NCBI GenBank assembly: GCA_964035545.1
Contig: OZ037769.1
Span: 62,001-126,000 of the forward strand
Direction: 5' to 3'
Origin: Bugula neritina
Taxonomy: Eukaryota; Animalia; Bryozoa
Length of the DNA: 64,000 bases
The notes under the pieces were generated by a model. It saw nothing but the letters and a program-made list of their open reading frames with translations, ran no database searches and had not been told where the DNA came from. Below are positions 313 to 64,000 of the stretch, piece after piece (positions within the stretch are counted from its first letter, which is position 1; each line of letters starts with the position of its first letter). The translations under genes and the position numbers were made by a program.

Positions 313-1800
313 TATACTACTATATACTGTATGCTAACTCTCTATATATACTACTATATACTGTATGCTAACTCTCTATATATACTACTATATACTGTAT
401 GCTAACTCTCTATATATACTACTATATACTGTATGCTAACTCTCTATATATACTACTATATACTGTATGCTAACTCTCTATATATACTACTATATACTGT
501 ATGCTAACTCTCTATATATACTACTATATACTGTATGCTAACTCTCTATATATACTACTATATACTGTATGCTAACTCTCTATATATACTACTATATACT
601 GTATGCTAACTCTCTATATATACTACTATATACTGTATGCTAACTCTCTATATATACTACTATATACTGTATGCTAACTCTCTATATATACTACTATATA
701 CTGTATGCTAACTCTCTATATATACTACTATATACTGTATGCTAACTCTCTATATATACTACTATATACTGTATGCTAACTCTCTATATATACTACTATA
801 TACTGTATGCTAACTCTCTATATATACTACTATATACTGTATGCTAACTCTCTATATATACTACTATATACTGTATGCTAACTCTCTATATATACTACTA
901 TATACTGTATGCTAACTCTCTATATATACTACTATATACTGTATGCTAACTCTCTATATATACTTCTATATACTGTATGCTAACTCTCTATATATACTAC
1001 TATATACTGTATGCTAACTCTCTATATATACTACTATATACTGTATGCTAACTCTCTATATATACTACTATATACTGTATGCTAACTCTCTATATATACT
1101 ACTATATACTGTATGCTAACTCTCTATATATACTACTATATACTGTATGCTAACTCTCTATATATACTACTATATACTGTATGCTAACTCTCTATATATA
1201 CTACTATATACTGTATGCTAACTCTCTATATATACTACTATATACTGTATGCTAACTCTCTATATATACTACTATATACTGTATGCTAACTCTCTATATA
1301 TACTACTATATACTGTATGCTAACTCTCTATATATACTACTATATACTGTATGCTAACTCTCTATATATACTACTATATACTGTATGCTAACTCTCTATA
1401 TATACTACTATATACTGTATGCTAACTCTCTATATATACTACTATATACTGTATGCTAACTCTCTATATATACTTCTATATACTGTATGCTAACTCTCTA
1501 TATATACTACTATATACTGTATGCTAACTCTCTATATATACTACTATATACTGTATGCTAACTCTCTATATATACTACTATATACTGTATGCTAACTCTC
1601 TATATATACTACTATATACTGTATGCTAACTCTCTATATATACTACTATATACTGTATGCTAACTCTCTATATATACTACTATATACTGTATGCTAACTC
1701 TCTATATATACTACTATATACTGTATGCTAACTCTCTATATATACTACTATATACTGTATGCTAACTCTCTATATATACTACTATATACTGTATGCTAAC
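313..1800. repeat. Intronic minisatellite, 34-nt unit (ctgtatgctaactctctatatatactactatata), ~44 near-identical copies
   Basis: Direct reading. Begins 5 nt inside the donor at 1805 of POLDIP2 intron 5. Confidence 0.97.
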
Positions 1801-1805
1801 ATTAC

Positions 1806-4800
1806 CTGAACTTTTGTCATGTATAAAAAACTTCTCAAAAAGGTCGTTGTGAATGGGCTGGGGGTCAGAGGTCGTGTACGGGATGACATCCTCGTGTGAC
1901 ACGTAATCCAGTCCGGGAATTGAAAACATGGAGCTCTCATTTCCTGTGTTTCCCATCAGAGTAACAGATTCTATCTGAGCATTCTGGAGAGTATAGCATA
2001 GCATAGCATAGCATAGCATAATAGTGTATAGTATAGCATAGTATAGTATAGCATAGTATAATAGTGTATACTGTATAGTATAGCATAGTATAATAGTGTA
2101 AAGTACAGCATAGTTTAGTATAGCATAGTATAGCATAGCATAATAGTGTATAGTATAGCATAGCATAGCATAGCATAGTATAGTACAGTATAGTATAGTA
2201 CAGTATAGCATAGTATAGCATAGTATAATAGTGTATAGTATAGTATAGCATAGTATAATAGTGTATAGTAGAGCATAGCATAGCATAGCATAATAGTGTA
2301 TAGTATAGCATAGTACAGTATAGCATAGTATAATAGTGTATACTGTATAGTATAGTATAGTATAGCATAGTATAATAGTGTATAGTATAGCATAGTATAG
2401 CATAATATAGCATAGCATAATAGTGTATACTGTATAGTATAGCATAGTATAATAGTGTAAAGTATAGCATAGCAGAGCATAGTATAGCAATGTATATATA
2501 ACACATATATCTTATATACTCACGATATGCGGCACGTCTTTAGCGTCTATAAGGGTCTGATAATATGTGTGAGTTTTACCAATAACATCCTTACCATGTC
2601 TACCACTTGGGTACGTCAAAGACCTGAGAAATCCAACATCAGTTCTATAGAGTATATTGTATACTAGTTCTATAGAGTATAGAGTGTATACTAGTTCTAT
2701 AGAGTATAGAGTGTATACTAGTTCTATAGAGTATATAGTGTATACTAGTTCTATAGAGTATATAGTGTATACTAGTTCTATAGAGTATAGTGTATACTAG
2801 TTCTATAGAGTATAGAGTATACTAGTTCTATAGAGTATACTAGTTCTATAGAGTATAGTGTATACTAGTTCTATAGAGTATAGAGTGTATACTAGTTCTA
2901 TAGAGTATAGTGTATACTAGTTCTATAGAGTATAGAGTGTATACTAGTTCTATAGAGTATAGAGTGTATACTAGTTCTATAGAGTATATAGTGTATACTA
3001 GTTCTATAGAGTATATAGTGTATACTAGTTCTATAGAGTATAGTGTATACTAGTTCTATAGAGTATAGAGTATACTAGTTCTATAGAGTATAGAGTATAC
3101 TAGTTCTATAGAGTATAGTGTATACTAGTTCTATAGAGTATAGAGTATACTAGTTCTATAGAGTATAGAGTATACTAGTTCTATAGAGTATAGAGTATAC
3201 TAGTTCTATAGAGTATAGAGTATACTAGTTCTATAGAGTATAGAGTATACTAGTTCTATAGAGTATATAGCGTATACTAGTTCTATAGAGTATAGCGTAT
3301 ACTAGTTCTATAGAGTATAGAGTATACTAGTTCTATAGAGTATAGAGTATACTAGTTCTATAGAGTATAGTGTATACTAGTTCTATAAAGTATATTGTAT
3401 ACTAGTTCTATAGAGTATATTGTATACTAGTTCTATAGAGTATAGAGTGTATACTAGTTCTATAGAGTATAGAGTGTATACTAGTTCCATAGAGTATATA
3501 GTGTATACTAGTTCTATAGAGTATATAGTGTATACTAGTTCTATAGAGTATAGTGTATACTAGTTCTATAGAGTATAGAGTATACTAGTTCTATAGAGTA
3601 TACTAGTTCTATAGAGTATAGTGTATACTAGTTCTATAGAGTATAGAGTGTATACTAGTTCTATAGAGTATAGTGTATACTAGTTCTATAGAGTATAGAG
3701 TGTATACTAGTTCTATAGAGTATAGAGTGTATACTAGTTCTATAGAGTATATAGTGTATACTAGTTCTATAGAGTATATAGTGTATACTAGTTCTATAGA
3801 GTATAGTGTATACTAGTTCTATAGAGTATAGAGTATACTAGTTCTATAGAGTATAGAGTATACTAGTTCTATAGAGTATAGTGTATACTAGTTCTATAGA
3901 GTATAGAGTATACTAGTTCTATAGAGTATAGAGTATACTAGTTCTATAGAGTATAGAGTATACTAGTTCTATAGAGTATAGAGTATACTAGTTCTATAGA
4001 GTATAGAGTATACTAGTTCTATAGAGTATATAGCGTATACTAGTTCTATAGAGTATAGCGTATACTAGTTCTATAGAGTATAGAGTATACTAGTTCTATA
4101 GAGTATAGAGTATACTAGTTCTATAGAGTATAGTGTATACTAGTTCTATAAAGTATATTGTATACTAGTTCTATAGAGTATATTGTATACTAGTTCTATA
4201 GAGTATAGAGTATACTAGTTCTATAGAGTATAGAGTATACTAGTTCTATAGAGTATAGCGTATACTAGTTCTATAGAGTATATAGCGTATACTAGTTCTA
4301 TAGAGTATAGTGTATACTAGTTCTATAGAGTATAGAGTATACTAGTTCTATAGAGTATACTAGTTCTATAGAGTATAGAGTATACTAGTTCTATAGAGTA
4401 TAGTGTATACTAGTTCTATAAAGTATATTGTATACTAGTTCTATAGAGTATATTGTATACTAGTTCTATAGAGTATAGAGTGTATACTAGTTCTATAGAG
4501 TATAGAGTGTATACTAGTTCTATAGAGTATATAGTGTATACTAGTTCTATAGAGTATATAGTGTATACTAGTTCTATAGAGTATAGTGTATACTAGTTCT
4601 ATAGAGTATAGAGTATACTAGTTCTATAGAGTATACTAGTTCTATAGAGTATAGTGTATACTAGTTCTATAGAGTATAGAGTGTATACTAGTTCTATAGA
4701 GTATAGTGTATACTAGTTCTATAGAGTATAGAGTGTATACTAGTTCTATAGAGTATAGAGTGTATACTAGTTCTATAGAGTATATAGTGTATACTAGTTC

Positions 4801-6377
4801 TATAGAGTATATAGTGTATACTAGTTCTATAGAGTATAGTGTATACTAGTTCTATAGAGTATAGAGTATACTAGTTCTATAGAGTATAGAGTATACTAGT
4901 TCTATAGAGTATAGTGTATACTAGTTCTATAGAGTATAGAGTATACTAGTTCTATAGAGTATAGAGTATACTAGTTCTATAGAGTATAGAGTATACTAGT
5001 TCTATAGAGTATAGAGTATACTAGTTCTATAGAGTATAGAGTATACTAGTTCTATAGAGTATATAGCGTATACTAGTTCTATAGAGTATAGCGTATACTA
5101 GTTCTATAGAGTATAGAGTATACTAGTTCTATAGAGTATAGAGTATACTAGTTCTATAGAGTATAGTGTATACTAGTTCTATAAAGTATATTGTATACTA
5201 GTTCTATAGAGTATATTGTATACTAGTTCTATAGAGTATAGAGTATACTAGTTCTATAGAGTATAGAGTATACTAGTTCTATAGAGTATAGCGTATACTA
5301 GTTCTATAGAGTATATAGCGTATACTAGTTCTATAGAGTATAGTGTATACTAGTTCTATAGAGTATAGAGTGTAGCCTAGTTCTCTAGAATATAGAGTGT
5401 AGCCTAATTCTATAGAATATAGAGTATACTAATTCTATAGAGTATACTAGTTCTATAGAGTGTATACTAGTTCTATAGAATATAGAGTGTAGCCTAGTTC
5501 TATAGAGTATAGAGTGTATAGTGTAATATGGTAGCATACTTTGTGTCATCTCTGTCGTATACTTTGGCAACCCAAGGGAAGAGCACCACACCTTTATATC
5601 CCAGTACTTGGTGAAGGAACAACTAAAACACGTATCATAGGAAAACAGATTAATGGGAGTTGTTGAGAGGTTAGCATGAAGGCAGGTAGAGTCATATTGA
5701 GTATAAACTATTAATGTAAAGACAGAGCTAATGACTAGTATGGGAGATGGTACCAAGCATACCTGCCCTGCCTCGTACTTTCCTTGTAGCTTCGGAGTTT
5801 GTAATCTCCCCACTTCTACTAGTCTAAAACATCACAGAATCACAATACCCAGTAGTTGAAACAATACGTGAATGATAGGTACAAGTATTCAACACACAAC
5901 TTACTAAGAAGTATTCAACACAGAACGTACTAAGAAGTATTCAACACATAACGTACTGAGTATTCAACACATAACGTACTAAGTATTCAACACATAACGT
6001 ACTGAGTGTTCAACACATAACGTACTGAGTATTCAACGCATAACGTACTAAGTATTCAACACATAACGTACTAAGTGTTCAACACATAACGTACTGAGAA
6101 GTATTCAACACATAACGTACTGAGTAATCAACACATAACGTACTGAGTATTCAACACATAACGTACTGAGTATTCAACACATAACGTACTAAGTGTTCAA
6201 CACATAACGTACTAAGTGTTCAACACATAACGTACTGAGAAGTATTCAACACATAACGTACCGTGAGGAAAACCGATGAGAAGATGTTTCTAAAGCAGCA
6301 CCACAGCAGCAGAGGAGAGGTGAAGCCACATTAGCGAGGGTCGCGACCTGCTTTGACCAACCAATCACAGACAACAT
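1806..6377 (-). CDS. POLDIP2: Polymerase delta-interacting protein 2 (PDIP38), 5' part; gene continues beyond the left edge of the window
   Basis: Exons 6377-6262, 5823-5763, 5622-5540, 2644-2524 and 1983-1806 join in frame through GT-AG introns. They give a transit-like N-terminus (MLSVIGWSKQ...) then EVGRLQTPKLQGKYEAGQLFLHQVLGYKGVVLFPW...GKTHTYYQTLIDAKDVPHI...IPGLDYVSHEDVIPYT, matching the POLDIP2 YccV-like region. The ApaG/DUF525 domain is not in the window. Confidence 0.93.
1991..2490. repeat. Intronic degenerate (tagca/tagta)n pentamer-based array
   Basis: Fills POLDIP2 intron 4 (1984-2523) and is the source of the spurious Y/C/L-rich ORFs. Confidence 0.9.
2641..5520. repeat. Intronic minisatellite, 18-26-nt unit with core actagttctatagagtata, >100 copies with higher-order blocks
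   Basis: Fills POLDIP2 intron 3. The unit contains the acceptor junction CTATAG|AACT. Confidence 0.97.
5895..6261. repeat. Intronic minisatellite, ~23-nt unit (acacataacgtactgagtattca)
   Basis: POLDIP2 intron 1. On the - strand the unit starts at the donor GTACGT. Confidence 0.95.
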
Positions 6378-9443: not shown

Positions 9444-11333
9444 TCAAGACAAGATGAATGTTGCATCATTTTGAAGAGCTGAGCTCAGGACTCTGTTTCC
9501 AGAAGTTAACCTGTTGTGTGGAGTCCAGGAGGGACCAATATCCTCGCCTGAAGAGAAAAAACCCAGAGTAGAATATGGTGGTCAGCACACAGTATATATC
9601 TGTCAGCACACAGTACATATCTGTCAGCATACAGTATATATCTGTCAGCATACAGTATATATCTGTCAGCACACAGTATATATCTGTCAGCATACAGTAC
9701 ATATCTGTCAGCACACAGTACATATCTGTCAGCATACAGTATATATCTGTCAGCATACAGTATATATCTGTCAGCACACAGTACATATCTGTCAGCACAC
9801 AGTACATATCTGTCAGCATACAGTACATATCTGTCAGCATACAGTATATATCTGTCAGCATACAGTACATATCTGTCAGCACACAGTACATATCTGTCAG
9901 CACACAGTATATATCTGTCAGCATACAGTACATATCTGTCAGCACACAGTACATATCTGTCAGCATACAGTATATATCTGTCAGCACACAGTACATATAT
10001 CTGTCGGCATACAGTACATATCTGTCAGCATACAGTATATATCTGTCAGCATACAGTACATATCTGTCAGCACACAGTACATATCTGTCAGCACACAGTA
10101 TATATCTGTCAGCATACAGTACATATCTGTCCGCATACAGTATATATCTGTCAGCACACAGTATATATCTGTCAGCACACAGTATATATCTGTCAGCACA
10201 CAGTACATATCTGTCAGCACACAGTACATATCTGTCAGCACACAGTATATATCTGTCAGCACACAGTACATATATCTGTCAGCATACAGTATATATCTGT
10301 CAGCACACAGTATATATCTGTCAGCATACAGTATATATCTGTCAGCACACAGTATATATCTGTCAGCACACAGTATATATCTGTCAGCACACAGTATATA
10401 TCTCCCAGCACACAGTACATCTACCTGTCAGCACATTGTAGTGATTCGTCAGCAGTCTATTTTTCGGCATCTCATGCTTTGGCTTACTGAGGTCTAACAT
10501 TGCACCGAGTTTGCTATGAGTGAGTGTATACTGAGATAAGTTGGCAGGTTTGTAGCCTCTAGAGGTCAATGTTTGCCGAACTCTTTCACTCTCCATACTG
10601 ACTGCCTTGTTATCTAACACTGGCTGTAGGATTTGACAATGCTACAAGGTAGATACAGGTAGATCAGTAGCTGTAAGTGTATAGAGTACACAGTTGTACT
10701 TACATAGTATGGTACTTACACTCTGAGAATACTTGCTGTAGTAGTCACCACTGTAAGTAGAACTTCGCTGAAAGCTAGGTTCTCTCCCCAGAACTATCTG
10801 TGAGGTGTGCATAGACCTGCACGCATGAGGTTTGGAGGAAGGCAATAGGCCACTTTTACCACCATATTGCTGTAATATCATTCATATACTATAATATACC
10901 ATATACTCATGTACTATGTACTTACATACTACATGCTTCCACACTACATACTATGTACTTACATATATCTACACTATATACTCACATACTACATACTTAC
11001 ATATATTGAACATATTATAATTAAATAAATTGTGTATATACTTGCATATTTTGAGGTAGAGACAAACATAGGTTTCACTGGAGCATATGTCATCGTTGTA
11101 GCATGCATTGGCCGATCTCCTTTGGCAGGAGTTACATATTCTTCATTCAGGTTTGGCAACTGACGCTCTTTATATGGTATTATGCAGGGGTACGCATAGT
11201 CTGCTGTACTAATTATACCACTGTTTGACCCTTGACCTTTTGGCTTCGAGCGCTTACCACAGTCTTTACCAAAATATTCACCGTCGCCTTGAGGTGAACG
11301 GTGGTGTAACTTAGCATCCAGTGTTCTCAACAT
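9444..11333 (-). CDS. Uncharacterised protein, ~252 aa
   Basis: Exons 11333-11046, 10869-10720, 10641-10425 and 9547-9444 total 759 nt in one frame (MLRTLDAK...NHYNVLTGEDIGPSW...SGNRVLSSALQNDATFILS*). Intron 1 needs a GC donor (TAT|GCAAGT) to keep frame. No family recognised with confidence. Confidence 0.6.
9581..10436. repeat. Intronic minisatellite, 21-nt unit (ctgtcagcacacagtatatat), ~40 copies
   Basis: Fills intron 3 of the uncharacterised gene. The unit includes the last 11 nt of the upstream exon. Confidence 0.96.
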
Positions 11334-15105: not shown

Positions 15106-18100
15106 TTACTTGCTTCTGCTAGCATTACATCCAACACAGCAAGCCAGTATGATCCCAAGAATCTACAAAGAGTTGAAGAATTAGTACTAGGGTGTACAGT
15201 GACTGAGTTACTATACAGTGACTGAGTTACTATACAGTGACTGAGTTACTATACAATTACTATACAGTGACTGAGTTACTAGACAGTGACTGGGTTACTA
15301 TACAGTGACTGGGTTACTATACAGTAACTGAGTTACTATACAGTGACTGAGTTACTATACAGTGATTGAGTTACTATACAGTTACTATACGGTGACTGAG
15401 TTACTATACAGTGACTGAGTTACTATACAGTGACTACTATACAGTGACTGAGTTACTATACAGTGACTGAGTTACTAGACAGTGACTGGGTTACTATACA
15501 GTGACTGGGTTACTATACAGTAACTGAGTTACTATACAGTGACTGAGTTACTATACAGTGACTGAGTTACTATACAGTGATTGAGTTACTATACAGTTAC
15601 TATACGGTGACTGAGTTACTATACAGTGACTGAGTTACTATACAGTGACTACTATACAGTGACTGAGTTACTATACAGTGACTGAGTTACTAGACAGTGA
15701 CTGGGTTACTATACAGTGACTGGGTTACTATACAGTGACTGAGTTACTATACAGTGACTGAGTTACTATACAGTGATTGAGTTACTATACAGTTACTATA
15801 CAGTTACTGAGTTACTATACAGTTACTATACGGTGACTGAGTTACTATACAGTGACTGAGTTACTATACAGTGACTGAATTACTATACAGTTACTGAGTG
15901 ATGTCACTCACCTCAATGACTCCAAATCCAATGGCCACACCTCCAACAACCACAATGTTATTCTCAATAAAATCAATGGCTTTAGTCAGACAGCCATCAG
16001 TGTAGCTGCCCTGTGGAAAATATATAGAGTTAGTATTACAGGTGCACACACACTATAACATATAGAGTTAGTATTACAGGTGCACACACACTATAATATA
16101 TAGAGATAGTATTACAGCTGCACACACACTATAACACATAGAGTTAGTATTACAGGTGCACACACCCACACTATAATATATAGAGATAGTATTATAGGTG
16201 CACACACACACATACTATAATATATAGAGTTGGTATTACAGGTGCACACACACACACTATAATAAAGTAAAGCAACGTACACAGCTAGCTGGAATCTTTC
16301 CTCCCTGATTTGGTGCGATAGTTCGATCTTCCCAGTCGGCTGAGGAGTTGACGCCACAACATTCCTTGAATCATACAGTAATATACGTTACAGTAATACG
16401 ATATTATACATTACAGTAATACGATATTATACATTACAGTAATATGATATTATACGTTACAGTGATACGATATTATACGTTACAGTAATACGATATTATA
16501 CGTTACAGTGATACGATATTATGCGTTACAGTAATACGATATTATACGTTACAGTAATACGATATTATACGTTACAGTGATACGATATTATGCGTTACAG
16601 TAATACGATATTATACGTTACAGTGATACGATATTATACGTTACAGTGATACGATATTATACGTTACAGTAATACGATATTATACGTTACAGTGATACGA
16701 TATTATGCGTTACAGTAATACGATATTATACGTTACAGTAATACGATATTATACGTTACAGTGATACGATATTATGCGTTACAGTAATACGATATTATAC
16801 GTTACAGTGATACGATATTATGCGTTACAGTAATACGATATAATACGTTACAGTATTATAGATAGAGTTACACACCAGTTTCTCCTGAAGTGTGTCCCAT
16901 GCATCTTTAGCCACATTATCAACACTCTCATTATACAAGGCCATAAACTTCATGCTGTTGTTTGTTATCAGATCCTCAATCTGAGTTCGGTAGTGGAAGG
17001 CAACTGCTCCGGCAGCAATCTCAGCAATCAGGAGGATTCCAATGATGACTGCAAACTAGTAGAGTAGTACAGTGTAATACAGTGTAATATAATACTATAC
17101 AGTGTAATACAGTGTAATATAGTATACAGTGTAATATACTATACAGTGTAATACAGTGTAATATAGTATACAGTGTAATATACTATACAGTGTAATACAG
17201 TGTAATACAGTGTAATATAATACTATATAGTGTAATACAGTGTAATCCAGTGTAATACAGTGTAATACAGTGTAATCCAGTGTAATATAGTAGTAATAAA
17301 CACTCACAGTGTAAAGCAGGCATGAGCTCTCTTTGCACGCTCCAATGCAGCCAATGGCAGCTATGAGAAAGGTGATGCAGCCGAAACTGATGATGACTAT
17401 AGCGGGAGCATTGATCATCTTATTACCTACGATATCCAGGTAGCTACTCAGAGCTACGTAGGCGTATACACCCGCTGCCACTAGCCCAATTCCAATCAAC
17501 TGTCAATATATATAACATCATATGGTACTAGTAGTAGTGTGAGTGGTGTAGTGATACTAGTAGTGTGAGTGATGTAGTGATACCAGTAGTGTGAGTGGTG
17601 TAGTGATACTAGTAGTGTGAGTGATGTAGTGATACTAGTAGTGTGAGTGATGTAGTGATACTAGTAGTGTGAGTAATGTAGTGATACTAGTAGTGTGAGT
17701 GGTGTAGTGATACTAGTAGTGTGAGTGGTGTAGTGATACTAGTAGTGTGAGTGGTGTAGTGATACTAGTAGTGTGAGTGATGTAGTGATACTAGTAGTGT
17801 GAGTGATGTAGTGATACTAGTAGTGTGAGTGGTGTAGTGATACTAGTAGTGTGAGTGATGTAGTGATACTAGTACTGTGAGTGGTGTAGTGATACTAGTA
17901 GTGTGAGTGGTGTAGTGATACTAGTAGTGTGAGTGATGTAGTGATACTAGTAGTGTGAGTGATGTAGTGATACTAGTAGTGTGAGTGATGTAGTGATACT
18001 AGTAGTGTGAGTGATGTAGTGATACTAGTAGTGTGAGTGATGTAGTGATACTAGTAGTGTGAGTGATGTAGTGATACTAGTAGTGTGAGTGATGTAGTGA

Positions 18101-20410
18101 TACTAGTAGTGTGAGTGATGTAGTGATACTAGTAGTGTGAGTGATGTAGTGATACTAGTAGTGTGAGTGAAGTAGTGATACTAGTAGTGTGAGTGATGTA
18201 GTGATACTAGTAGTGTGAGTGGTGTAGTGATACTAGTAGTGTGAGTGATACTAGTAGTGTGAGTGGTGTAGTGATACTAGTAGTGTGGGTACAGAGTAGT
18301 CGCAAGCGCACACGGTGACCTAGTTTAACACAAATTCGTTAGGAGCTAGTCAGGGCTGCAAGGGCGTTAACATCTATTCAAGCAGTGCAGAATATCGCAT
18401 GGTTCATTGATTCCTCTCATGATGAACAAACAACCTCCTTTCTCTGCGTATGCCGCAACGTAATGCATGAATAACAATTATTCAGTGTAAAAGGATCAAT
18501 AGGCAGGGCTAGTATTAGTCTAACACAAGAGAAAGAGAGAGACTAGCTATAAGAATTATGTGGTAATATAACTGTATATATTATACTTTGTATTGTATAC
18601 AAAAGTCATTCACTGCCTTGTAGAACCTATGCATAACACAGATATTTATACAGTGCACTATCAACTCATGCGTGAGTTATTACATACGGGTTATTACTCT
18701 AATTAGAATATGAGTTAGCAGTTTCCATGGACACACCTGCTGGCACTTGGCATACCTGTGCACTCATAGCATACCAAAAATGGTCTCATCTCAACTGACC
18801 TAAATTACTCATAACTCTGCTAGCAACTTGATACTGCTGTAGGCAATCTATTCCTGAAGGTAATCTGCCCAGCTAATAACAATTCCTGTCATGATTAAAG
18901 GCTAATACTCAATTTGACTGGGTTTGCTTGTAGTCTGTCACTGGTGCATACATAAAGTCACGTCTACTTAAGTAGGTCAGCAGTAAGTGTTAGTTGACCT
19001 AGTGACAGCTTGCCTGCAGAGCTCTTACCGTCTACTCTCTCTGTCTCAACTATCCTGGTAAGAGCTGTACAAAGCATATGCTGCCACTACTAGCTGCTGC
19101 TACTAGCTGCCACTACTAGTACTCAAGAGGTCTGAGGCAGCAGCTGCCGTGTCAGAACATTGCCTGTTGCTGGTTGTTGGGCATTCATTTAGATTAGACG
19201 CTTGCAGTTACTTGCCAAACTAACAGAGCAGCTAACAGAGTGGCTGACATATTTATTCTATATTTAGTTTGAGACAAAGAATATGCTTCTAATTCGATTT
19301 TTAAAAAAGGAAATTTTATGCTGAGCTAAAAAGCTTGAAAGGATGCTAGTATTTACAAGACAGTAAATTTATAGTAAGTGAATAGCAATAGAAAGGGAAG
19401 AACAGCACCAGAGTAACAAATATTGTCCTATAACTAACAGCACATGTTAATGACTCATTGGGAGTCAGAGAATTCAAAAGCAGCAGTTTGTGGCGTTTTA
19501 TCTAGAATTATTGTGACATCTTATCTAGAACATTGTGAGGTTTATTGCAGAAGTATTAACTCAAATCCATAGACAATATCAATATGTATATGAAGATGTC
19601 ACAAGCAAGGTTAAACTTAGACTTCAAGCAGAGAGTGAACCCAATTACACTGTTGATTAAACAATTAAATGCAGGTTATGGTTTCCAATTGAAATAATTA
19701 TTGAAACTAAAGTTCAAACTTTCCTTAATATCAATATATTTACTATAACTATAATTTATCACTTATCAGCGATTAAATCAAATATAAAATCAGTACCAGC
19801 CGTAGTTACTGATACTGACAGTAAATGTAATTACATTTAGTTTTACAGCAATGTTAAAATAATAATCTCTTCTAACAATAACTCTAAGTATTAAGTACTA
19901 ATATTTAACAGTCTATGACTATAGAGTATAGAGTGATAGAACGACACTCACTCTGAGTTGTTAATCATAATAATAATAGCAATACTAATACTAATAGTAA
20001 TAGCAATACTAACACTAACAGTAATAGTAATACTAACAGTAATACTGACAGTAATACTAACTAAGTCTAATAAGTAATAAGTAATAGCAACAATAAATAT
20101 AATATTAATAGCAATATTTATAGTAATAGCAAATGTAATACTCATAGTCTATTCCTATAGCTATAACCTTTTACATTTACTTTTAGTTTTACTGATTTAG
20201 TTTTACCAACTCTAACAGTAACAGTAACACTCAGTAACAGTATGACTATGAGTATGACTATGAGTAACACTAACACTGATACTGATAGTAATTTATGATT
20301 AGCAACAGATCATGGGTACTGCAACTTACACAAAACAAAACGTTGAAAATAATGAGACACCATTTTGCACAGTTAGCACAGCCATCAACATCTCTTCCTT
20401 TTCCTGCCAT
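15106..20410 (-). CDS. Tetraspanin (paralog A)
   Basis: Exons 20410-20330, 17499-17308, 17055-16876, 16364-16281, 16010-15912 and 15162-15106, all phase 0 GT-AG. Four TM segments, GCIGACKESSCLL, and LEL with CCG...DW...PASC...DGC. Confidence 0.92.
15196..15900. repeat. Intronic minisatellite, 19-nt unit (acagtgactgagttactat) with higher-order blocks
   Basis: Fills tetraspanin A intron 5. Confidence 0.95.
16021..16262. repeat. Intronic minisatellite, ~37-41-nt unit (atatagagttagtattacaggtgcacacacactata...)
   Basis: Fills tetraspanin A intron 4. Confidence 0.9.
16376..16860. repeat. Intronic minisatellite, 23-nt unit (acagtaatacgatattatacgtt)
   Basis: Fills tetraspanin A intron 3. Confidence 0.95.
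17066..17290. repeat. Intronic 10-nt based array (tacagtgtaa)
   Basis: Fills tetraspanin A intron 2. Confidence 0.9.
17528..18290. repeat. Intronic minisatellite, 26-nt unit (gtgatactagtagtgtgagtgatgta), ~29 copies
   Basis: 3' end of tetraspanin A intron 1, ending ~28 nt before the acceptor. Confidence 0.96.
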
Positions 20411-21514: not shown

Positions 21515-21890
21515 CTAATGCTGCTCATAGTGACTGTTCTTGCTCATTGTGCAGGCCAAGTAGCACGAGATAATAACTCCAAAGATCTGCAATACAACAG
21601 TCAGTAAAGCCAATAACTAATGCAGAGTGTTGCTTTGCTTTGTTGATAAGTATACATTTGTTACTATGCACTTTGGTAGATTGAATGCTTACCTGAATTA
21701 TACAGAAAGTGATAGCCACAGCCCCAACAGCTTTACCTACTGACATTACCAAGTCTTTATAGACCTCAAAGCACCCATCCTGCAGTCATATATACACATA
21801 ACATGTAACATGTGATATGTATAATACTATGTACTATGTCATATCTCACCTGATAGATAATGTACTATATATATAATATATATGACATAG

Positions 21891-21939
<49 letters not shown>

Positions 21940-23793
21940 CTATGTCATATCTCACCTGATAGAGTTCACCAGATGTAGCTTTGCAAGATGGTGGTGGAGC
22001 TTTCCAGTCTCCCCTTCCGTTTATTCCACAGCATTCCTGTGTATTCATAATACTACATTACTATAGGTTATATTACTACATTACTAGTTTATATTACTAC
22101 ATTACTTAATTATATTAACATATTACTATATTATATTACTAGTTTATATTATTATATTACTATATTATATTACTATATTACTAATTTATATTACTATATT
22201 GCTAGTTTATATTACTATATTACTATTTTATATTACTATATTACTTATTTATATTATTATATTACTATATTATATTACTATATTACTAATTTATATAACT
22301 ATATTGCTAGTTTATATAACTATATTGCTAGTTTATATAACTATATTGCTAGTTTATATTACTATATTACTAGTTTATATTATACACATTTCTATATATG
22401 GCACATGGATAGTCTCACAGAGATAGACAGATAAGAACCGCTTATGGATTAAACTACTGGGGAGTATTCACACCCACCCCTTCTGACTGCGCAACGTCCC
22501 AGGCTATTGTGATAGTAGATTTGGTCTGGTTCATTGCAGCTTCTGAAGCTGTCATTATCTGCACAACCCAGTCCTGTGAAGTTTCATCATCCAACTTGCT
22601 CAGTTTCTGGGCTCCAACCACAACGACTATTCCGATGATAAACTCTATGAAGACCAGCACTGCCATAGTCACTGAGAACTGCAAACAAACCCTCAGTTTA
22701 TACAAGCAGAGCAGCTTCAGCAGTTGAAAGTTCACTCATGGCCTGTGAATTTAGAGTATCACTAAATATAAGCAGAAAGTTGAAGTGAAAAATGGACTCA
22801 CTGTGAAAAGCAGACACTTGTTCTCTTTGCACGCCCCAACCCACCCACAGGATGATATGAAGAGCGTGACTAGACCAACGACAATTACAAAGGCAGCGGC
22901 CGCCACTAGTCCTGTACGGACGCCTTCTACATTGTCTTGTGTCTGTATATTCTCCGGCAGCGTTTCTAGCAGCTCCACAAAATCCATCGTCTTAGCCTTG
23001 CCCACTCCATATGATCCGACACCAACTAGTATCACTGCTACCACCTGTCAAACATACACCAACTAGTAGCACTGCTACCACCTGTCAAACATACACCAAC
23101 TAGTAGCACTGCTACCACCTGTCAAACATACACCAACTAGTAGCACTGCTACCACCTGTCAAACATACACCAACTAGTAGCACTGCTATAACCTGTCAAA
23201 CATACACCAACTAGTATAGTATATTATAGTAGCACTGCTATAACATATTACATTGTACTGTATATTATATATAGCCTAGTATTATAGATTATAGATAATA
23301 GTATAACATACTAAACTGTACTGTATATTATATAGTATTAAAGATAATAGTATAACATATTACACTGTACTGTATATTATATAGTATTATAGATAATAGT
23401 ATAATATATTACACTGTACTGTATATTATATAGTATTATAGATAATAGTATAACATATTACACTGTACTGTATATTATATGGTATTCTAGATGATAGTAT
23501 AATATATTACACTGTACTGTATATTATATAGTATTATAAATGATAGTATAACATATTACATTGTACTGTATATTATATAGTATTATAAATGATAGTATAA
23601 CATATTACACTGTACTGTATATTATATAGTATTATAAATGATAGTATAACATATAACACTGTACTGTATATTATATAGTATTATAGATGATAATCTCACT
23701 CACCGAAAATATTACATTGAAGATGATAAACAACCATCTCACAGTTTTATGTCCACAGCTGATTTCAGAAGGTAGAGAGGGTCCCACAGTCAT
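21515..23793 (-). CDS. Tetraspanin (paralog B)
   Basis: Exons 23793-23704, 23044-22802, 22678-22478, 22036-21956, 21779-21693 and 21586-21515, all phase 0. GWVGACKENKCLL, CCG...DW...PPSC...DGC, four TM segments. Confidence 0.9.
22050..22385. repeat. Intronic AT-rich ~21-nt degenerate array (tattactatattgctagttta)
   Basis: Tetraspanin B intron 3. Confidence 0.85.
23019..23695. repeat. Two adjacent intronic arrays: 37-nt acceptor+exon unit (23019-23215) and ~39-nt AT-rich unit (23220-23695)
   Basis: Together they fill tetraspanin B intron 1. Confidence 0.93.
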
Positions 23794-24389: not shown

Positions 24390-24514
24390 CTCCGAGTTGG
24401 GGTGAGTGAGTGCAATAGTTTGGGTTCTCAAGTTTAGAGTAGGATTTTCTACTAAACCCCCACCCTAAACTCAAGAATCTTGAAACATTGCACTTATTCA
24501 ACCCTAATCCGGAG
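24390..24514. mobile_element. Degenerate palindromic MITE-like element (~125 bp)
   Basis: The left arm ctccgagttggggtgagtgagtgcaat...agtttagagtagg aligns imperfectly with the reverse complement of the right arm (ctccggattagggttgaataagtgcaat...agtttagggtgg). Confidence 0.45.
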
Positions 24515-36800: not shown

Positions 36801-36837
36801 TCACCTCTTTCTCGTCTGTGCTCATGGCTGTAGTCAT
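33809..36837 (-). CDS. CocE/NonD family alpha/beta hydrolase (peptidase S15 / PepX-like C-terminal domain)
   Basis: Exons 36837-36805, 36433-36032, 35910-35824, 35729-34382 and 33989-33809 join in frame. Motifs IPLNDGVELSARLWMP, EFLPYRKRD, VDMRGCGDSTG, GMMGISWGG (nucleophile elbow), DDRFQDDIHYKGG, GYADGY, IIGPWVHLYP and a beta-sandwich C-terminus. Confidence 0.88.
34002..34362. repeat. Intronic low-complexity arrays (taatacag; ttactattagactactag)
   Basis: Fill the last intron of the CocE/NonD gene. Confidence 0.85.
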
Positions 36838-38478: not shown

Positions 38479-49217
<10,739 letters not shown>

Positions 49218-52200: not shown

Positions 52201-52220
52201 AAGCACAAATAAATTTAAAT

Positions 52221-53383
52221 TTAGTCGATTTTAACATTACACTCCGTCTTATATATCATTTGACTGATAAATTTCCAGAACAGTTCTTTGTCTAAATTTG
52301 TAACAAAATTCAAAAAACTACAAGTTCCATTTTCAACGTAACTTCCATTAGCAACAGAGGAGTCGACTATAGAGTTGAGAATAGAGCAGGAGCCTTCGTC
52401 CAGCGTCCTGAAGAACATGGGAGCAAGTATATGTTTTTGTATGAGTCTGAGGGGGAGATAAGTATGCTGGTATAGCGAGGAGGCAACAACTCCCGGGTGT
52501 ACAGAGTGCACCCGTACAGAGGACTGTGTGAGGTGAGAAAGCTGCTGAGCAAGACACTCCGAGTAAAGTACTACTGCGAGTTTAGACTGAATGTAAGAGA
52601 GATGAGGCGAATATACTTGGGGCGTAGTATAAAGACTTCTACTAAACAACAACCGAACAAAGGCTATTTTATGTACAGAGGAAGCTATGTTGACAATCTG
52701 CGGCGAATATCCGTCAACAGCAGCCATTTTCAGTTTGGTCAGCAGCAACTTAGTGAGAAGGGAGTGTCCAATGAAGTTAACCCCCATGTGCTGCTCAAAC
52801 CCGTCTTCTGTCTTCATTTGCGGCAGCAACATCACACCGGCATTGTTTATTAACACATCTAATTTTGCAAATTTGAGAGAGAACTCTTTCACAGCATCAT
52901 GAATCGACTTGAATGAAGCTAAGTTCATATATATATAATGAAGTTGCCCTCTCTCTTTATATAGCCTTAGTTCACTTGAGTTAGACTGCTCAGGTATTGG
53001 TTGAAGGCCCGCAGCAACAACCGTAGCTCCTTTACTACATAAAATTCTACACACAGAGAGACCTACAATGAAATACCTTATATGGCAATATAATATTATC
53101 ATAACATATATAATATTGCTGTAGCATATATGTCATGACATATATAATATTGCTGTAGTGTGTATATCATGCTATATGTAATATATAACATATTTTTACC
53201 AATGCCAGACACACCACCAGTACAGAACACAACTCTCCCTCTGAAATAATCGTCATCAATTGACTCATCTAGCTCTACTCGCTGCCACACCTGCCCCACC
53301 ATCTCAACAAACCCATGAATGTAGAGTCGGACAGCACAATATACAGCTAGAAGGTACCCTCGAACTTTAGTTCCAATGTTCAT
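52221..53383 (-). CDS. DHRSX: Short-chain dehydrogenase/reductase, DHRSX-like
   Basis: Exons 53383-53200 and 53062-52221. TGGVSGIG spans the intron, followed by LINNAGVM, TEDGFEQHMGVNFIGH, VNIASSVH and YSPHLSYIQSKLA (YxxxK, resembling DHRSX YSPHAAYAQSKLA), then VHPGVV. Confidence 0.75.
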
Positions 53384-57449: not shown

Positions 57450-60400
57450 TCACGCTTGAGCAGCGCTGGCTCTCTTCTCCTTTGCCGTCACCGGTTCACC
57501 CAGAGCTCCGCCCATTCTCACCGATTTATTCAATGAGAGCTCAGTGAAGTCAAATGCTTTTGGGGCCTCAAATATCATGACGATGGTGGAGCCCAGACGG
57601 AACTCTCCGAATGCATCTCCACGCTTTAGAGACACTCCACGGGGGAAGAATTCATCTTCATATGTCATTTCCTTTCGACCTTCACAGCCAGTGTTGGTTT
57701 CTAGTTTCTAAAGTAGTCAGTATAGAGTATATAGTGTATATAGTGTATATAGTGTATAGAGAGTATATAGAGTATATAGAGTATAGAGTGTATATAGAGT
57801 ATAGAGTGTATATAGTGTATATAGTGTATATAGTGTATATAGTGTATAGAGATTACATAGTACATAGTATATAGAACATAGTACATAGTACACAGTATAT
57901 AGTACATAGTATATAGTACATAGTATATAGTACAGAGTATATAGTACGTAGTATATAGTACATAGTACATAGTATATAGTACATAGTATATAGTACATAG
58001 TATATAGTATATAGTACACAGTATATAGTATATAGTACATAGTACAGAGTATATAGTACGTAGTATATAGTACATAGTACACAGTATATAGTACGTAGTA
58101 TATAGTACATAGTACATAGTATATAGTACAGAGTATATAGTATATAGTAGAGTACATAGTACACAGTACATAGTACATAGTATATAGTATATAGTACACA
58201 GTATATAGTACATAGTATACAGAGTATTATACAGAGTAGGAACTTACCGGGTCAAAGTAGGTGCGGATGGAGCCGACGTTAGTAGCGCCCACAGCTGTGT
58301 AGGAGAAGAAGCCATGTTTCCAGCTGCCCGTGTACACAGCTCTCTCGTTCATACTAAACAGTCCCTCCACGTAGCTGGCTATCATCGGGTTGACCGACAG
58401 CAGCTCTCCTACAATAAGTATACAGTGTCAGCACAGGCAGCGTCTAGTGTGTTACTACAAGACAGCGTCTAGTGTGTTACTACAAGACAGCGTCTAGTGT
58501 GTTACTACAAGACAGCGTCTAGTGTGTTACTACAAGGCAGTGTCTACTACAAGACAGCGTCTAGTGTGTTACTACAAGACAGCGTCTAGTGTGTTACTAC
58601 AAGGCAGCGTCTAGTGTGTTACTACAAGACAGCGTCTAGTGTGTTACTACAAGGCAGTGTCTACTACAAGACAGCGTCTAGTGTGTTACTACAAGACAGC
58701 GTCTAGTGTGTTACTACAAGGCAGCGTCTAGTGTGTTACTACAAGGCAGCGTCTAGCGTGTTACTACAAGACAGTGTCTAGCGTGTTACTACAAGACAGC
58801 GTCTAGTGTGTTACTACAAGACAGCGTAAAGACAGCACTCACCATGGAAGTGCCGTCTGTGTTCAACTGTCCAATCAGCAGGACTGTGGAATCTGTGGTA
58901 GTCGCCTGGAGCCAGATATATGACTACGTGGTAGAGTCTGTTGTCCTTGTTGTGTAGCAGAGACCTACCAAACACACGAGTAGTGAGTATACAGAGTAGA
59001 GTATACAGAGTATACAGAGTATACAGAGTACACAGAGTACACAGAGTACACAGAGTATACAGAGTAGAGTATACAGAGTACACAGAGTACACAGAGTACA
59101 CAGAGTACACAGAGTACACAGAGTACACAGAGTACACAGAGTACACAGAGTACACAGAGTATACAGAGTAGAGTATACAGAGTACACAGAGTACACAGAG
59201 TACACAGAGTGTACAGAGTGTACAGAGTATACAGAGTATACAGAGTACACAGAGTACACAGAGTATACAGAGTACACAGAGTACACAGAGTACACAGAGT
59301 ACACAGAGTACACATAGTGTACAGAGTGTACAGAGTATACAGAGTATACATAGTGTACAGAGTATACAGAGTACACAGAGTACACAGAGTAGTGAGTGTA
59401 GAGTACTGAGTGATACTAGTCACATACTTGTAATGCTGTGACTCGCTAATCCCTTTAAACTCGGCATCTGATTGGTCCAACTCCTTCTCCATCTCTAAAT
59501 CTGACCAACAGTTGGCGGAGGTCTTCCCCTCCTTGTACATCCACAGATTGTTTGGACCAAGAAACCCCTTCAATGAATAATTCACCCCCTTGACTTGCTC
59601 GATTGTTCCATCCACCACTTTGCCAAAATTCAAGACTTTCCCATCTGATGGCATAACCTGAGAAAGACACAGTACACCGCCGCAATATAATATAATACGA
59701 TATAATACTATAATATAACACAATGTAATATAATACAATATAATATAATACGATATAATATAATACACTACACAATATAATACTATAATATAACACAATG
59801 TAATACTATAATATAACACAATATAATATAATACAACACAATATAATAATATAATATAACACAATGTAATACCAACCAGTGAGTGATCCTCAGCTATGGG
59901 TCTGGCACCAGGTTTGAGGGCACGTCTGAAGAACTCCCCCAAGTTTCTATACTGACTGAGGTCCTCCACTAAGGCCTCCTGCACGTTGCAGTTGAACATC
60001 CGCACGTAAATAGAGAGTAGGAAGTTGCGAGAGAATTCTGGGAGAGGAAGCTCGTTGAACTTACCCCACACCCTGGACATGGCGCGGAGGGGGAGCGACC
60101 TGTACAGACTTACCTACAAGCAGCAGAACCTGGGCTATATAACTAGATAATATAACAATATAATATAACTATATAATATAATTTTATAATATATCTATAT
60201 AATATAATTTTATAATATAACTATATAATATAACTTTATAATATAACTATATAATATAACTATATAATATAACAATATAATATAACTATATAATATAACT
60301 ATATAATATAACTATATAATATAACTATATAATATATCTATATAATATAACTATATAATATAACTACATAATATAACTATATAATATATCTATATAATAT

Positions 60401-63400
60401 AATATATCTATATAATATAACAATATAATATAACTATATAATATAATATAACTATCTCACACAATCAAAACCTCAACCCTCCTCAATCTCACATACTATA
60501 ATACTCATACTTACAACTGAATTGCGACTAGGAGTACGAGGTGTAACAAGTAGACCCGTTCTCTTACGGGGCGCCGTGTCCACCACCCCGTAACTGTAGC
60601 TAAATATCTTAGGACTAAATATGACGGCCAGCCATAGCCCGTAGATCCACCTGCGGTGACAAGATTGCAGAGATACACTAAATACGACCACCCGTCCACT
60701 GAACACAAACAACAAGAAATTTCAACTATTATAAACAAGCAGACGCTATGGGAGATCATACCAACTGTACGTAGACTGTATAGCTTTAAACAACTGCTCT
60801 GTGTCGTACATCATCGTGTCTGCTAACATCAGTTATCCCACAGTAAATATTCCACGGCTTCAGTCTAGGGGAGCGAGAAAACACGTCCTACCTCTACGAT
60901 TGCACAGCGTGCAAGACTTAAGCGTATGAGCCCTCATTACTACAACAAAGTTGCTGGCATGGCCAAGACACTTTATCAAGCGAAATGTACGGGAGCCTCA
61001 CATTCGTCCCGTAACCTTTTATTATAATATGAGTAATGATAGATTGAATTAGCTAAAACAGTATCAACAGCCAATCAGAGTCTAGAGAGAAGAACACATG
61101 ACTACAAGGCACCATCTACAGATCGAGTCTGACGCCATAGAAACAGCCTAATGGAAACAACAGTATATAGTGACCACGTGCAGACCACGTGTTACAACTG
61201 TTTACAGCGTGAGAGGAGGCCGAATAGCGAGTACCGCAATGTTTACCGACCATCCGCTAAGCATGCTTCGCTATACAATGAACTGTTATGATGTGAGAAT
61301 ATGATCATGCGGAGCAGGCATGCCATATTGATTAGACGCTGGGATAATAGTTAGCTAAGACAAAAGACCTGCGTTATGTCATTCACTGAGACTTCACTTG
61401 CCAACCGAAAGACTAACTAACGAGCTATTACCATAACGTAAACAATTGATTGAATAATAGAAAATACAATCAACCTGCTTGAAAAAAGTAAATGAAAATA
61501 GGGCAGCGTATCTTACCTCGAAGTGAAGGTTGCACTGGGGCATTGCTAGAACCCCCTCAACCAATTCAAAGTTTAGCAGCTAAAGTATGCTAAGAAATCG
61601 TGCAATGGCCGACTCTAACAGCAACTTACTGACTGGAAGCTGATCATCCCTTCCTCCATTCCTTCATCAGCAACTGCTGCAGCTTATTCCTTAACTCACT
61701 CGCACACTGCACACACTCGCATGCTACACACACTCGCACACTGCACACACTCGCACACTGCACACACTCGCACACTGCACACACTCGCACGCTACACACA
61801 CTCGCACACTGCACACACTCGCACGCTGCACACACTCGCACGCTGCACACACTCGTACACTACACACACTGCACACACTCAGCACACTACGTACACTGCA
61901 CACACTCGCACACTAGAGAGCTAAAGTCTAACAATAATGAGTACAACTACTAGCACAAACTTTAACAGAGAAAGGAGAGTTCTATGTTCAAGAGAATGTA
62001 TAGATAGTTCAATGGCTTGGGCATTACATAATCCTAATTATATAATATTGCTTGATATTATATACTCATTGAATGTGTATATTATATAAATACTCTTTAT
62101 ATACTCATTGAATGTATATATTAGTATATATATACTCTTTATATACTCATTGAATGTATATATTAGTATATATATACTCTTTATATACTCATTGAATGTA
62201 TATATTAGTATATAAATACTCTTTACATACTCATTGAATGTATATATTAGTATATAAATACTCTCTATATACTCATTGAATGTATATAGTATATAAATAC
62301 TCTCTATATACAGATGCAAAGTACGCAAGTACCAATATTTTAGCAATATATAAAAATAATTGTCGAAGCAAGTGTATTGTCAAAAATACGTAACTCGGCG
62401 AATTTATTAAAAATTCAACTAGTATTGGACAATTACCATTCTTTTATATAAAGTTTAGAATGTAACATTGACTCGAGAACAAAAAGATGCAGAGTTATCT
62501 TCTCAGGAGCAAATTATCAAAAGAGAATACAACCCTCGAAACCACACAAGCCATAAATCTTAAAACTATTGTGCATTATATTATTTAACATTATAATAGA
62601 GGATATTACAGTATATTATATTACAGTATAGCATATTATATTAATACAGTATATTATATTATATCACAGTATAGTGTATTATAGTATATTACAGTATATT
62701 ATATTACAGAATATTATAGTATATCTGTGAGATACAGTATATTATAGTATATCTGTGAGATACAGTATATTACAGTATATCTGTGAGATACAGTATATTA
62801 TAGTATATCTGTGATATACAGTATATTATAGTATATCTGTGAGATACAGTATATTATAGTATATCTGTGATATACAGTATATTATAGTATATCTGTGAGA
62901 TACAGTATATTATAGTATATCTGTGAGATACAGTATATTATAGTATATCTGTGAGATACAGTATATTATAGTATATCTGTGAGATACAGTATATTATAGT
63001 ACATCTGTGAGATACAGTATATTATAGTATATCTGTGAGATACAGTATATTATAGTATATCTGTGAGATACAGTATATTATAGTATATCTGTGAGATACA
63101 GTATATTATAGTATATCTGTGAGATACAGTATATTATAGTATATCTGTGATATACAGTATATTATAGTATATCTGTGAGATACAGTATATTATAGTATAT
63201 CTGTGAGATACAGTATATTATAGTATATCTGTGAGATACAGTATATTATAGTATATCTGTGAGATACAGTATATTATAGTATATCTGTGAGATACAGTAT
63301 ATTATAGTATATCTGTGAGATACAGTATATTATAGTATATCTGTGAGATACAGTATATTATAGTACATCACATATTCTACCTCCAGATTGCTGGCTAATT

Positions 63401-63666
63401 TCACAGAGTCAGTGCCAGTCTTCCGGGAGGACTTTATGGTAAGATATGCCAAGAGACCAGCTGTTACGGGGACTCCTGCTCTCCACACCCAAGGCTTTCC
63501 TGTCCAGATACAGAATAGAGGCTATGAGAAGTGAAAGAGCAAAAGAAAACAGCATCACTGGATAATGTGAGAGAGAGAGCAGAAACTTACTGGTGGGATG
63601 ACGACTCCAAGTTTCAGCAAATCGTTGTGTCTGGGGCCTTAGTGAGCTGGAACGTATAGTGATCAT
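57450..63666 (-). CDS. PISD: Phosphatidylserine decarboxylase proenzyme, mitochondrial
   Basis: Exons 63666-63591, 63499-63381, 60113-59877, 59657-59428, 58964-58843, 58408-58248 and 57707-57450. Motifs LASNLE|[61 protein letters not shown] and [10 protein letters not shown] (LGST autocleavage). A further 5' exon may lie beyond the right edge. Confidence 0.93.
57718..58235. repeat. Intronic arrays (tatatagtg; tagtaca)
   Basis: Fill the last PISD intron. Confidence 0.9.
58432..58836. repeat. Intronic minisatellite, 25-nt unit (acaagacagcgtctagtgtgttact)
   Basis: Fills a PISD intron. On the sense strand each unit carries CTTGTAG, resembling the true acceptor ATTGTAG. Confidence 0.94.
58985..59400. 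repeat. Intronic 9-nt array (yacagagta)
   Basis: Fills a PISD intron. Same 9-mer as in ACSF3 intron 4. Confidence 0.93.
59685..60455. repeat. Two AT-rich intronic arrays (59685-59870; 60137-60455) flanking PISD exon 60113-59877
   Basis: Direct reading (tataatataac-type units). Confidence 0.85.
61695..63365. repeat. Three intronic arrays: ~20-nt cacact(61695-61915), ~39-nt (62055-62310) and 28-nt ctgtgagatacagtatattatagtatat (~62720-63365)
   Basis: In the long PISD intron. The 28-nt array starts ~15 nt after the donor at 63380. Confidence 0.92.
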
Positions 63667-63677
63667 GCTACAAGTAC

Positions 63678-64000
63678 ACATGTTCATACTGAGACATGTT
63701 GACACTGAGACATGTTGACACTGAGACATGTTGACACTGAGACATGTTCACACTGAGACATGTTGACACTGACATATGTTCATACTGAGACATGTTGACA
63801 CTGAGACATGTTGACACTGAGACATGTTCACACTGAGACATGTTGACACTGAGACATGTTGACACTGAGATATGTTCACACTGAGATATGTTGATACTGA
63901 GACATGTTTATACTGAGATATGTTGACACTGAGACATGTTGACACTGAGACATGTTCATACTGAGACATGTTTATACTGAGACATGTTGACACTGAGACA
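63678..64000. repeat. Intronic minisatellite, 16-nt unit (ctgagacatgttgaca), truncated by the window edge
   Basis: Ends ~10 nt before the acceptor at 63668. Confidence 0.94.

Follow-up and report, generated by a model that had tools for sequence, protein, structure and literature searches.

The introns of the 64,000-nucleotide stretch of Bugula neritina DNA analysed here (the window) are crowded with tandem repeats lying close to their splice sites, and the question raised by this locus is what places the repeats there. A sequence-only reading had proposed that a process linked to splicing or transcription repeatedly amplifies the splice junction itself into the intron. The best explanation, to which we give a probability of roughly 0.55, is that the arrays are locus-private minisatellite VNTRs of the ordinary recombination- or repair-driven kind, densest near chromosome ends and shaped by four steps.

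The window is subtelomeric and wholly contains 49 modelled introns, 35 of which carry an array; among introns of at least 170 nt the count is 33 of 35, which bears out the earlier claim that the longer introns are array-rich, the arrays lying where that claim had placed them. The array-bearing genes are POLDIP2 (presumably; we recognised it from its sequence), an orphan gene, tetraspanins A and B, ACSF3, TENT4, and PISD, with further arrays in the last CocE intron and a short one in an RDH intron. A Pfam search with two exons (POLDIP2 and ACSF3) gave no match. The wider sample comprised about 210 kb, mostly of one chromosome arm, with 138 modelled introns and 68 minisatellites, and the gene models were hand-curated, with RNA support confined to ACSF3. 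About half of all sampled introns carry an array, and most arrays lie within 20 nt of a splice site.

The arrays are of the minisatellite VNTR kind (head-to-tail units of about 9-100 nt), and the units are AT-rich and almost without A-tracts. Arrays with units of 9-41 nt had been described; the arrays are there, but in the window the real span of unit length is 5 to about 50 nt. The further claim that each intron has its own unit held for all three long units tested (18-25 nt), which were private to their own introns in a search of the 216 Mb own genome, but not for the 9-nt unit of ACSF3 intron 4, which was found at about 10 loci with matches clustering at distal positions.

In POLDIP2 (minus strand), intron 5 (312..1800) holds 44 copies of a 34-nt unit, the first of which begins 5 nt past the donor, and the 5/10-nt array of intron 4 (1990..2489) ends 6 nt short of the acceptor. 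Intron 3 (2641..5520) carries 111 copies of a private 25-nt unit that includes the acceptor AG and 4 exon nucleotides, and it was found to contain 108 decoy acceptors with scores close to that of the real acceptor, as well as perfect internal block duplications of 720-850 nt. The 16 copies of a 23-nt unit in intron 1 (5879..6261) start exactly at the donor GT. The last intron of the orphan gene (9581..10435, minus strand) has 40 copies of a 21-nt unit with 11 exon nucleotides, and the GT is lost from 36 of 36 downstream copies. In the sister lineage, this intron has no 33-nt 3' unique tract, and a unit provides the acceptor AG.

The arrays in introns 1-5 of tetraspanin A (15195..18265, minus strand), with units of 26, 10, 23, 38, and 19 nt, cross no junction, all lie 8-32 nt from a splice site, and are also present in the sister lineage. 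Intron 1 of tetraspanin B (23019..23692, minus strand) holds two arrays: five copies of a 37-nt unit that includes the acceptor and 26 exon nucleotides, yielding 4 full-strength decoys, and eight copies of a 49-nt unit that starts 11 nt past the donor and is unamplified in the sister lineage. The 21-nt array of intron 3 (22047..22382, minus strand) ends 10 nt short of the acceptor, and intron 4 (21780..21963, minus strand) has no array but a donor-spanning duplication of about 100 nt, present as two copies, together with a (TA)n tract.

In ACSF3 (plus strand), introns 1-4 (28936..30155) have 22-, 18-, 19-, and 9-nt arrays, with the intron 3 unit starting at the donor. RNA contigs show the junctions of introns 1, 3, and 4, and in introns 3 and 5 they show the outermost sites only, although such contigs lose rare forms and the lineage sampled is a diverged one. 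Intron 5 (30426-30785, within 30424..30789) consists of exactly 15 copies of a private 24-nt unit with GT at its start and AG at its end. In intron gain by tandem duplication, an AGGT-containing exon segment duplicates, and intron 5 resembles such a case in that it is made of a whole number of GT...AG units and its junction is in phase. However, its position is shared with scallop and two other animals and is thus ancestral, and the unit has no match to exons. Intron gain was therefore rejected, and the intron is an old one that was replaced. The remaining ACSF3 arrays (30962..33469) have units of 34 nt in intron 6 (with 2 exon nucleotides), 33 nt between exons 7a and 7b, 29 nt downstream of 7b, and 22 nt in intron 9, and they have other copy numbers in other samples. 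The scallop ACSF3 gene also has one junction-spanning VNTR.

The remaining genes are on the minus strand. The 18-nt and 8-nt arrays of the last CocE/NonD intron (34000..34361) are confirmed. Among the TENT4 intron arrays (43094..48510), that of intron 4 (47350-47758) has a private 18-nt unit with 5 exon nucleotides and 17 decoy donors, in frame and stop-free, and intron 6 (45737-45984) has a donor-spanning 28-nt duplication and 14-nt units. The RDH intron (53097..53184) has 2.6 copies of a 34-nt unit, the PISD introns (57719..60450) have 7-, 25-, 9-, 15-, and 13-nt arrays that cross no junction, and the last, poorly resolved gene (62590..64000) has 28-nt and 16-nt arrays in probable introns. 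Metagenome scans found no sister locus for TENT4 or PISD.

Two further arrays are exonic and have units that are multiples of three (3n): a 24-nt array in a zinc-finger gene (25680..25766, minus strand), a control showing that arrays arise in coding DNA too, and an 18-nt array in the last TENT4 exon (38763..38855, minus strand). All eight exonic arrays in the sample have 3n units, as compared to 17 of 68 intronic ones (P=6e-5). Two other arrays lie 17-24 nt beyond stop codons, at places without an annotated splice site. A candidate extra exon of an ankyrin gene outside the window was discarded because it failed the frame check.

The arrays recur, at different copy numbers, in Illumina contigs of two other samples and in JGI contigs of the sister lineage. 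Skips corresponding to 1 unit (34 nt) and 2 units (66 nt) were seen in X1, and copy numbers between lineages were 40 vs 17, 39 vs 13-19, and 34 vs 6. This polymorphism is directly observed: copy numbers differ by as much as about six-fold, and some arrays have been gained or lost between lineages, with most orthologous arrays kept across the roughly 6-10% divergence. The arrays contain interspersed variants and nested block duplications, and the units show no kinship from intron to intron or, in comparison with Watersipora, from species to species.

That the arrays hug exon edges, as had been claimed, is far beyond chance, long introns included. We found 61 arrays in the 17.4 kb within 50 nt of an exon and 6 in the 24.5 kb beyond, a density about 14 times greater, and arrays near exons mostly stop just inside the splice signals. 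Of the amplified arrays, 61 of 67 lie within 50 nt of an exon, compared to 1 of 8 two-copy duplications, which in this set of only 8 are distributed flatly along introns. Where introns contain long unique sequence, an exon is no more than 50 nt away from 18 of 23 arrays (6.4 expected), 13 of these hugging donors and 5 acceptors. Base composition was rejected as the cause because, although near-exon DNA is poorer in A-tracts, the weighted expectation is 7.2, against the 18 observed. Selection clearing arrays from exons, the weaker explanation offered by the sequence-only reading, is directly supported by the 3n rule, but it fails on its own to yield the long-intron hugging in a toy model; in this model, which has free parameters, all observed summaries were matched only by erosion combined with a 10-fold near-exon bias. 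Some exon-edge bias in birth or amplification appears to be needed.

The claim that the junction is the preferred source of units was not borne out. At least 3 exon bases are present in 10 of the 68 minisatellites, relative to 14.5%, 22.7%, and 26.5% in random-seed simulations on array-free introns with arrays redetected by TRF, and a collapsed-intron null predicts 19.9 junction-containing arrays. Among arrays within 20 nt of an exon, the same 10 compare with 21.9 expected (P=2e-4), an under-representation, and exon overlaps tend to be short, averaging 0.26 of the unit. A lenient count of junction-touching arrays (21 of 68) exceeds the most generous null (16.7%, P=0.003), but there is no excess relative to subtelomeric introns (P=0.31). 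Junction overlap matches or lies below the geometric null, the outcome that the sequence-only reading had itself named as refuting it, and junction-containing units are the minority expected from a 20-nt seed in a 100-200-nt intron. The junction cases put earlier at 11 or more are visible by eye, but a fixed TRF rule finds contact with GT/AG in only 8 of the 36 minisatellites of the window and at least 3 exon bases in 5 of them, and tetraspanin B intron 4 drops out. Unit starts have no peak at intron position +1, and units have no sense-strand G or donor bias (25 G>C vs 33 C>G, P=0.32), and no strand skew favors an R-loop or RNA-template origin.

On the one chromosome compared, arrays were present in 42 of 62 introns of the subtelomeric block and in 15 of 68 interior introns (P=2e-7), and human minisatellites are likewise enriched near chromosome ends (PMC2599865, PMC13196383). 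Of the array introns, 22 of 67 collapse to less than 77 nt, the length of the shortest array-free intron. In the sister lineage, 3' flanks appear to have been lost at short shared motifs in two introns, the direction of both events resting on parsimony and short-read assemblies; these two lineage comparisons support flank erosion by deletion as a probable process.

In the explanation that we prefer, a local stretch of 9-50 nt would first be duplicated in tandem. DNA repair or unequal exchange would then amplify arrays, most often near chromosome ends and roughly ten times more frequently within about 50 nt of an exon; our preferred guess is that meiotic repair pairs on conserved exons and slips at the start of the polymorphic intron. 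Selection would remove frame-breaking arrays and thin those that copy a strong splice site, and because of this survivors would mostly start just inside the splice signals. Finally, short deletions would erode the unique flanks until an array abuts the splice site or itself supplies it. Where true decoys remain, the exon-adjacent site would be used, and most decoy products would have a frameshift or stop, a setting in which exon definition and NMD may act.

The best-surviving alternative, which we regard as tentative, is that exon edges suffer damage linked to transcription or splicing (polymerase pausing, R-loops, chromatin or methylation at the edge), that this damage causes arrays to arise or expand beside exons, and that selection then removes most units copying splice sites. 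Neither base composition nor neutral turnover models explain the 14-fold edge excess, the long introns lean 13 to 5 to the donor side, and a coding-sequence CpG o/e of 0.45 suggests gene-body methylation. However, the units lack strand bias, the strong subtelomeric gradient is left unexplained, and two arrays lie past stop codons, away from annotated splice sites. We hold just as tentatively the broader proposal that a bryozoan-wide, transcription- or splicing-coupled process amplifies DNA about ten-fold more at exon edges and rebuilds introns and splice sites from private repeats.

Somewhat less probable is the absence of any positional bias, with uniform slippage, purifying selection on exons and splice signals, and a long-term turnover in which deletions and insertions leave the self-renewing arrays beside constrained anchors in place. 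This would fit the 3n rule, the collapsed introns shorter than the minimum length, erosion between lineages, and a transposon-like insertion that has made tetraspanin B intron 1 longer in the sister lineage, and a bias-free simulation reproduces the overall share of arrays within 20 nt (0.71). In long introns, however, that simulation places 20% within 20 nt, compared to the 57% observed, and recent transposon insertion was rejected as the source of long flanks because the two tested are single-copy.

It is improbable that the arrays are selected tuners of splicing or expression. Repeats near splice sites can tune splicing in humans (PMC10078293), and most orthologous arrays persist between the lineages, but the lack of kinship among units and the instability of copy number and presence argue against it. 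More improbable still is rolling-circle copying of junction-seeded small lariat-derived or eccDNA circles. A few units do start at or near +1 (POLDIP2 intron 1, ACSF3 introns 3 and 5, and two genes outside the window), but there is no peak there and no strand bias, even the shortest intron here is longer than the units, and a single small circle would not be expected to yield the interspersed variants and nested block duplications of the arrays. Moreover, a lariat loop excludes exon bases and the acceptor, so units containing them cannot derive from one. An assembly artefact deserves almost no credence, for although the exact copy numbers of the longest arrays rest on the assembly, independent short-read contigs enter or bridge arrays and JGI assemblies hold orthologous ones.

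The closest known case is the 37-bp VNTR in human F7 intron 7, in which the first unit spans the exon-intron boundary, identical donor pseudo-sites are silent, and the most upstream site is used (PMC1557585). Units likewise span the boundary and keep GT or AG in tetraspanin B intron 1, POLDIP2 intron 3, ACSF3 intron 5, and TENT4 introns 4 and 6. In contrast, the orphan intron copies lack GT, and the donor copies in POLDIP2 intron 1 and ACSF3 intron 3 score weaker than the real donor; therefore, the many identical decoys envisaged earlier exist only in some arrays. F7 is one locus, on the donor side only, whereas Bugula has many, including introns built wholly of units, and the acceptor decoys of POLDIP2 intron 3 are not obviously explained by a first-site scanning rule. 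The arrays also resemble subtelomeric hypervariable minisatellites of the MS32 and CEB1 type in being locus-private, polymorphic in copy number, internally variant, and enriched at chromosome ends (PMC2599865, PMC13196383). They differ in their AT-rich, nearly A-tract-free units, in occupying two thirds of subtelomeric introns, and in their concentration within 50 nt of exons. Introner elements are dispersed mobile families that create new introns; Bugula shares with them many introns of repetitive DNA carrying splice sites, but its units are private, tandem, and in old introns, and do not form a dispersed family. A limited search of the bryozoan literature found no description of such arrays, which is weak evidence of absence.

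Junction-spanning VNTRs were formerly known as single curiosities. In Bugula, some old introns have been wholly replaced by repeat units, which themselves provide the GT and AG, and the arrays offer a large set of natural and polymorphic constructs in which to test how a splice site is chosen from identical decoys, acceptors included. They also pose a measurable question, namely, why repeats amplify at exon edges.

The window is subtelomeric, since the 17.7-Mb contig C5 that holds it (assembly, 216 Mb) begins with a 10.3-kb telomeric array. The telomeric repeat at this left end (fetched loci L002:1-10000 and L003:1-352) is the 7-mer CCCCAAA (TTTGGGG) rather than the usual animal TTAGGG; either a motif derived in bryozoans or foreign sequence joined on by mistake could account for it. 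Hand-built, frame-checked gene models covered the window with its flanks and ten samples of 10 kb taken up to 7 Mb into C5, yielding 138 modelled introns; database searches were made exon by exon, and the joined models were used for frame checks and comparison with fetched loci. Orthologues of the window genes on JGI contigs of a related Bugula (the sister lineage) had 91-93% amino-acid identity, and the nearest named protein came from the bryozoan Watersipora subatra, in which the TENT4-CocE-ACSF3 order is also found.

It was found that 33 of 35 window introns of at least 170 nt carried a tandem minisatellite array, as the sequence-only reading had claimed for nearly every longer intron in 7 of the 11 genes. 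Its proposal of a different unit in each intron held for three units of 18-25 nt, which were unique in the genome, but one 9-nt unit was shared. The arrays are VNTRs and not assembly artefacts: the same arrays, with fewer units, were present in DNA contigs from two other samples, and orthologous arrays with differing copy numbers were present on sister-lineage contigs. The units shared a vocabulary rich in TACT, AGTA, GTAT, and CTAG, 4-nt palindromes were modestly over-represented, and 57 of 68 units had no A-tract. The tandem paralogues tetraspanins A and B (window 15106-23793) have five position-matched introns with unrelated arrays, and an intron of 5,976 nt in a C22orf15-like gene (locus L007:632-6587) consists of a 14-nt unit repeated 426 times plus just 20 unique bases. 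Where no gene is annotated, a 28-nt array (window 55388-56227) starts about 19 nt past a donor-like site on the + strand and may point to a spliced transcript that the annotation lacks.

Introns without an array are short, with a minimum of 77 nt and a median of 120 nt in the subtelomeric block and 213 nt overall, which means that a 20-nt seed placed at random will often span a junction. Of the 68 minisatellites, 10 included at least 3 exon bases and 16 touched the GT or AG. When random seeds were simulated and arrays redetected with TRF, the respective values were 14.5 and 16.7% for all array-free introns, 22.7 and 27.6% for subtelomeric ones, and 26.5 and 31.8% for introns up to 200 nt, whereas 19.9 and 24.0 arrays were expected from collapsed host introns (array cut down to one unit). 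The 11 junction cases originally noticed in the window compare with about 10 expected among 36. When only the 48 arrays lying no more than 20 nt from a splice site were counted, exon bases were present in 10 versus 21.9 expected (P = 2e-4, or 0.002 by a lenient count), and an excess appeared only when the most generous null was combined with a lenient count (21/68, P = 0.003). Therefore, the idea that units are seeded from the junction fails against random placement.

Per kb of positions, array density was 4.3 up to 20 nt from an exon, 2.0 between 21 and 50 nt, and about 0.25 farther away, which resembles DNA outside genes. Most arrays begin 4-20 nt past the donor or stop 4-33 nt short of the acceptor, immediately inside the splice signals. 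In introns with a collapsed length of at least 200 nt, the expectation was 3.8 of 23 arrays within 20 nt and 6.4 within 50 nt, against 13 and 18 observed; base composition hardly shifted the latter expectation (7.2 versus 18 observed). Adjacency to exons, not junction copying, is the genuine signal, and arrays do hug splice sites as first described. Two-copy duplications did not cluster in this way (1 of 8 within 50 nt), a hint that amplification or survival is the step at which the bias operates. When no positional bias was built into toy turnover models, they matched the overall hugging and did not reproduce that of long introns; the closest match, erosion with about ten-fold more births near exons, demonstrates sufficiency only, as these models have free parameters.

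Scoring with a simple matrix, for which these introns served as the training set, found donor-like sites in at least half the copies of 14 of 68 arrays, and acceptor-like sites likewise in 14 of 68. The envisaged many identical decoys thus exist in some arrays, but GT was missing from all 36 copies in the orphan gene intron. Decoy use would mostly cause a frameshift or stop, TENT4 intron 4 excepted. Only exon-adjacent sites were seen in RNA contigs, which cannot reveal rare forms.

Collapsed lengths of 24-76 nt in 22 of 67 array introns were shorter than every array-free intron, indicating loss of unique sequence once the arrays had formed. Comparison of the lineages reveals two such erosion events. 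A 33-nt pyrimidine tract of the orphan gene is absent from the sister lineage, where the acceptor is now supplied by a unit whose end is a copy of the upstream exon; the other event shortened the 3′ flank of tetraspanin A intron 5, at a shared motif of 5 nt. The end point is ACSF3 intron 5, whose 360 nt are made up of a 24-nt GT...AG unit repeated exactly 15 times. In RNA contigs of a lineage that has diverged by about 6%, which verified most ACSF3 junctions, this intron is spliced at the outermost sites. Its position is ancestral, and therefore an old intron was replaced. Joins made by erosion may explain why most exon overlaps are just 1-7 nt.

Arrays arise in coding DNA too: all eight exonic arrays had 3n periods, compared to 17 of 68 intronic ones (P = 6e-5). 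Six exonic arrays in an ankyrin-repeat gene (locus L010:5503-7683) are all 3n and code for peptide repeats of low complexity. Arrays were present in 42 of 62 subtelomeric introns versus 15 of 68 interior introns (P = 2e-7); human minisatellites likewise cluster terminally, which has been attributed to meiotic recombination (PMC2599865, PMC13196383). Because of this gradient, we favor meiotic repair anchored on conserved exons, which would amplify arrays at exon edges. A transcription-linked process may instead cause the exon-edge bias; array units had no strand skew. Copying of one small circle fits less well than repeated unequal exchange with the perfect 720-850 nt block duplications in POLDIP2 intron 3.

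Several other features were observed in the window. ACSF3 exon 7 exists as two tandem, mutually exclusive versions (31072-31217 and 31469-31614) that are about 40% identical, both used in RNA contigs and present in the sister lineage. TENT4 intron 10 contains a roughly 2.8-kb element with long terminal inverted repeats (40150-43000), adjoined by a (TAG)236 microsatellite (39134-39836), and POLDIP2 intron 5 a palindromic MITE-like sequence (181-310). Other matches to the CocE/NonD (peptidase S15) gene (33809-36825) were mostly bacterial, along with bryozoans and the copepod Tigriopus, and old horizontal transfer or patchy retention is possible.

Watersipora introns also carry private arrays, with unrelated units. 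Scallop ACSF3, fetched only as an outgroup (L045:5227-5650), has its own donor-spanning minisatellite with a 64-nt unit; it includes roughly 45 exon bases and offers five or six full decoy donors. Similarly, a 37-bp VNTR spans the donor of human F7 intron 7, where the pseudo-sites are silent (PMC1557585). Taken together, the initial observation is confirmed and its interpretation partly supported: this kind of array is already known, and what is new in B. neritina is the scale, the concentration at exon edges, and the replacement of whole introns.
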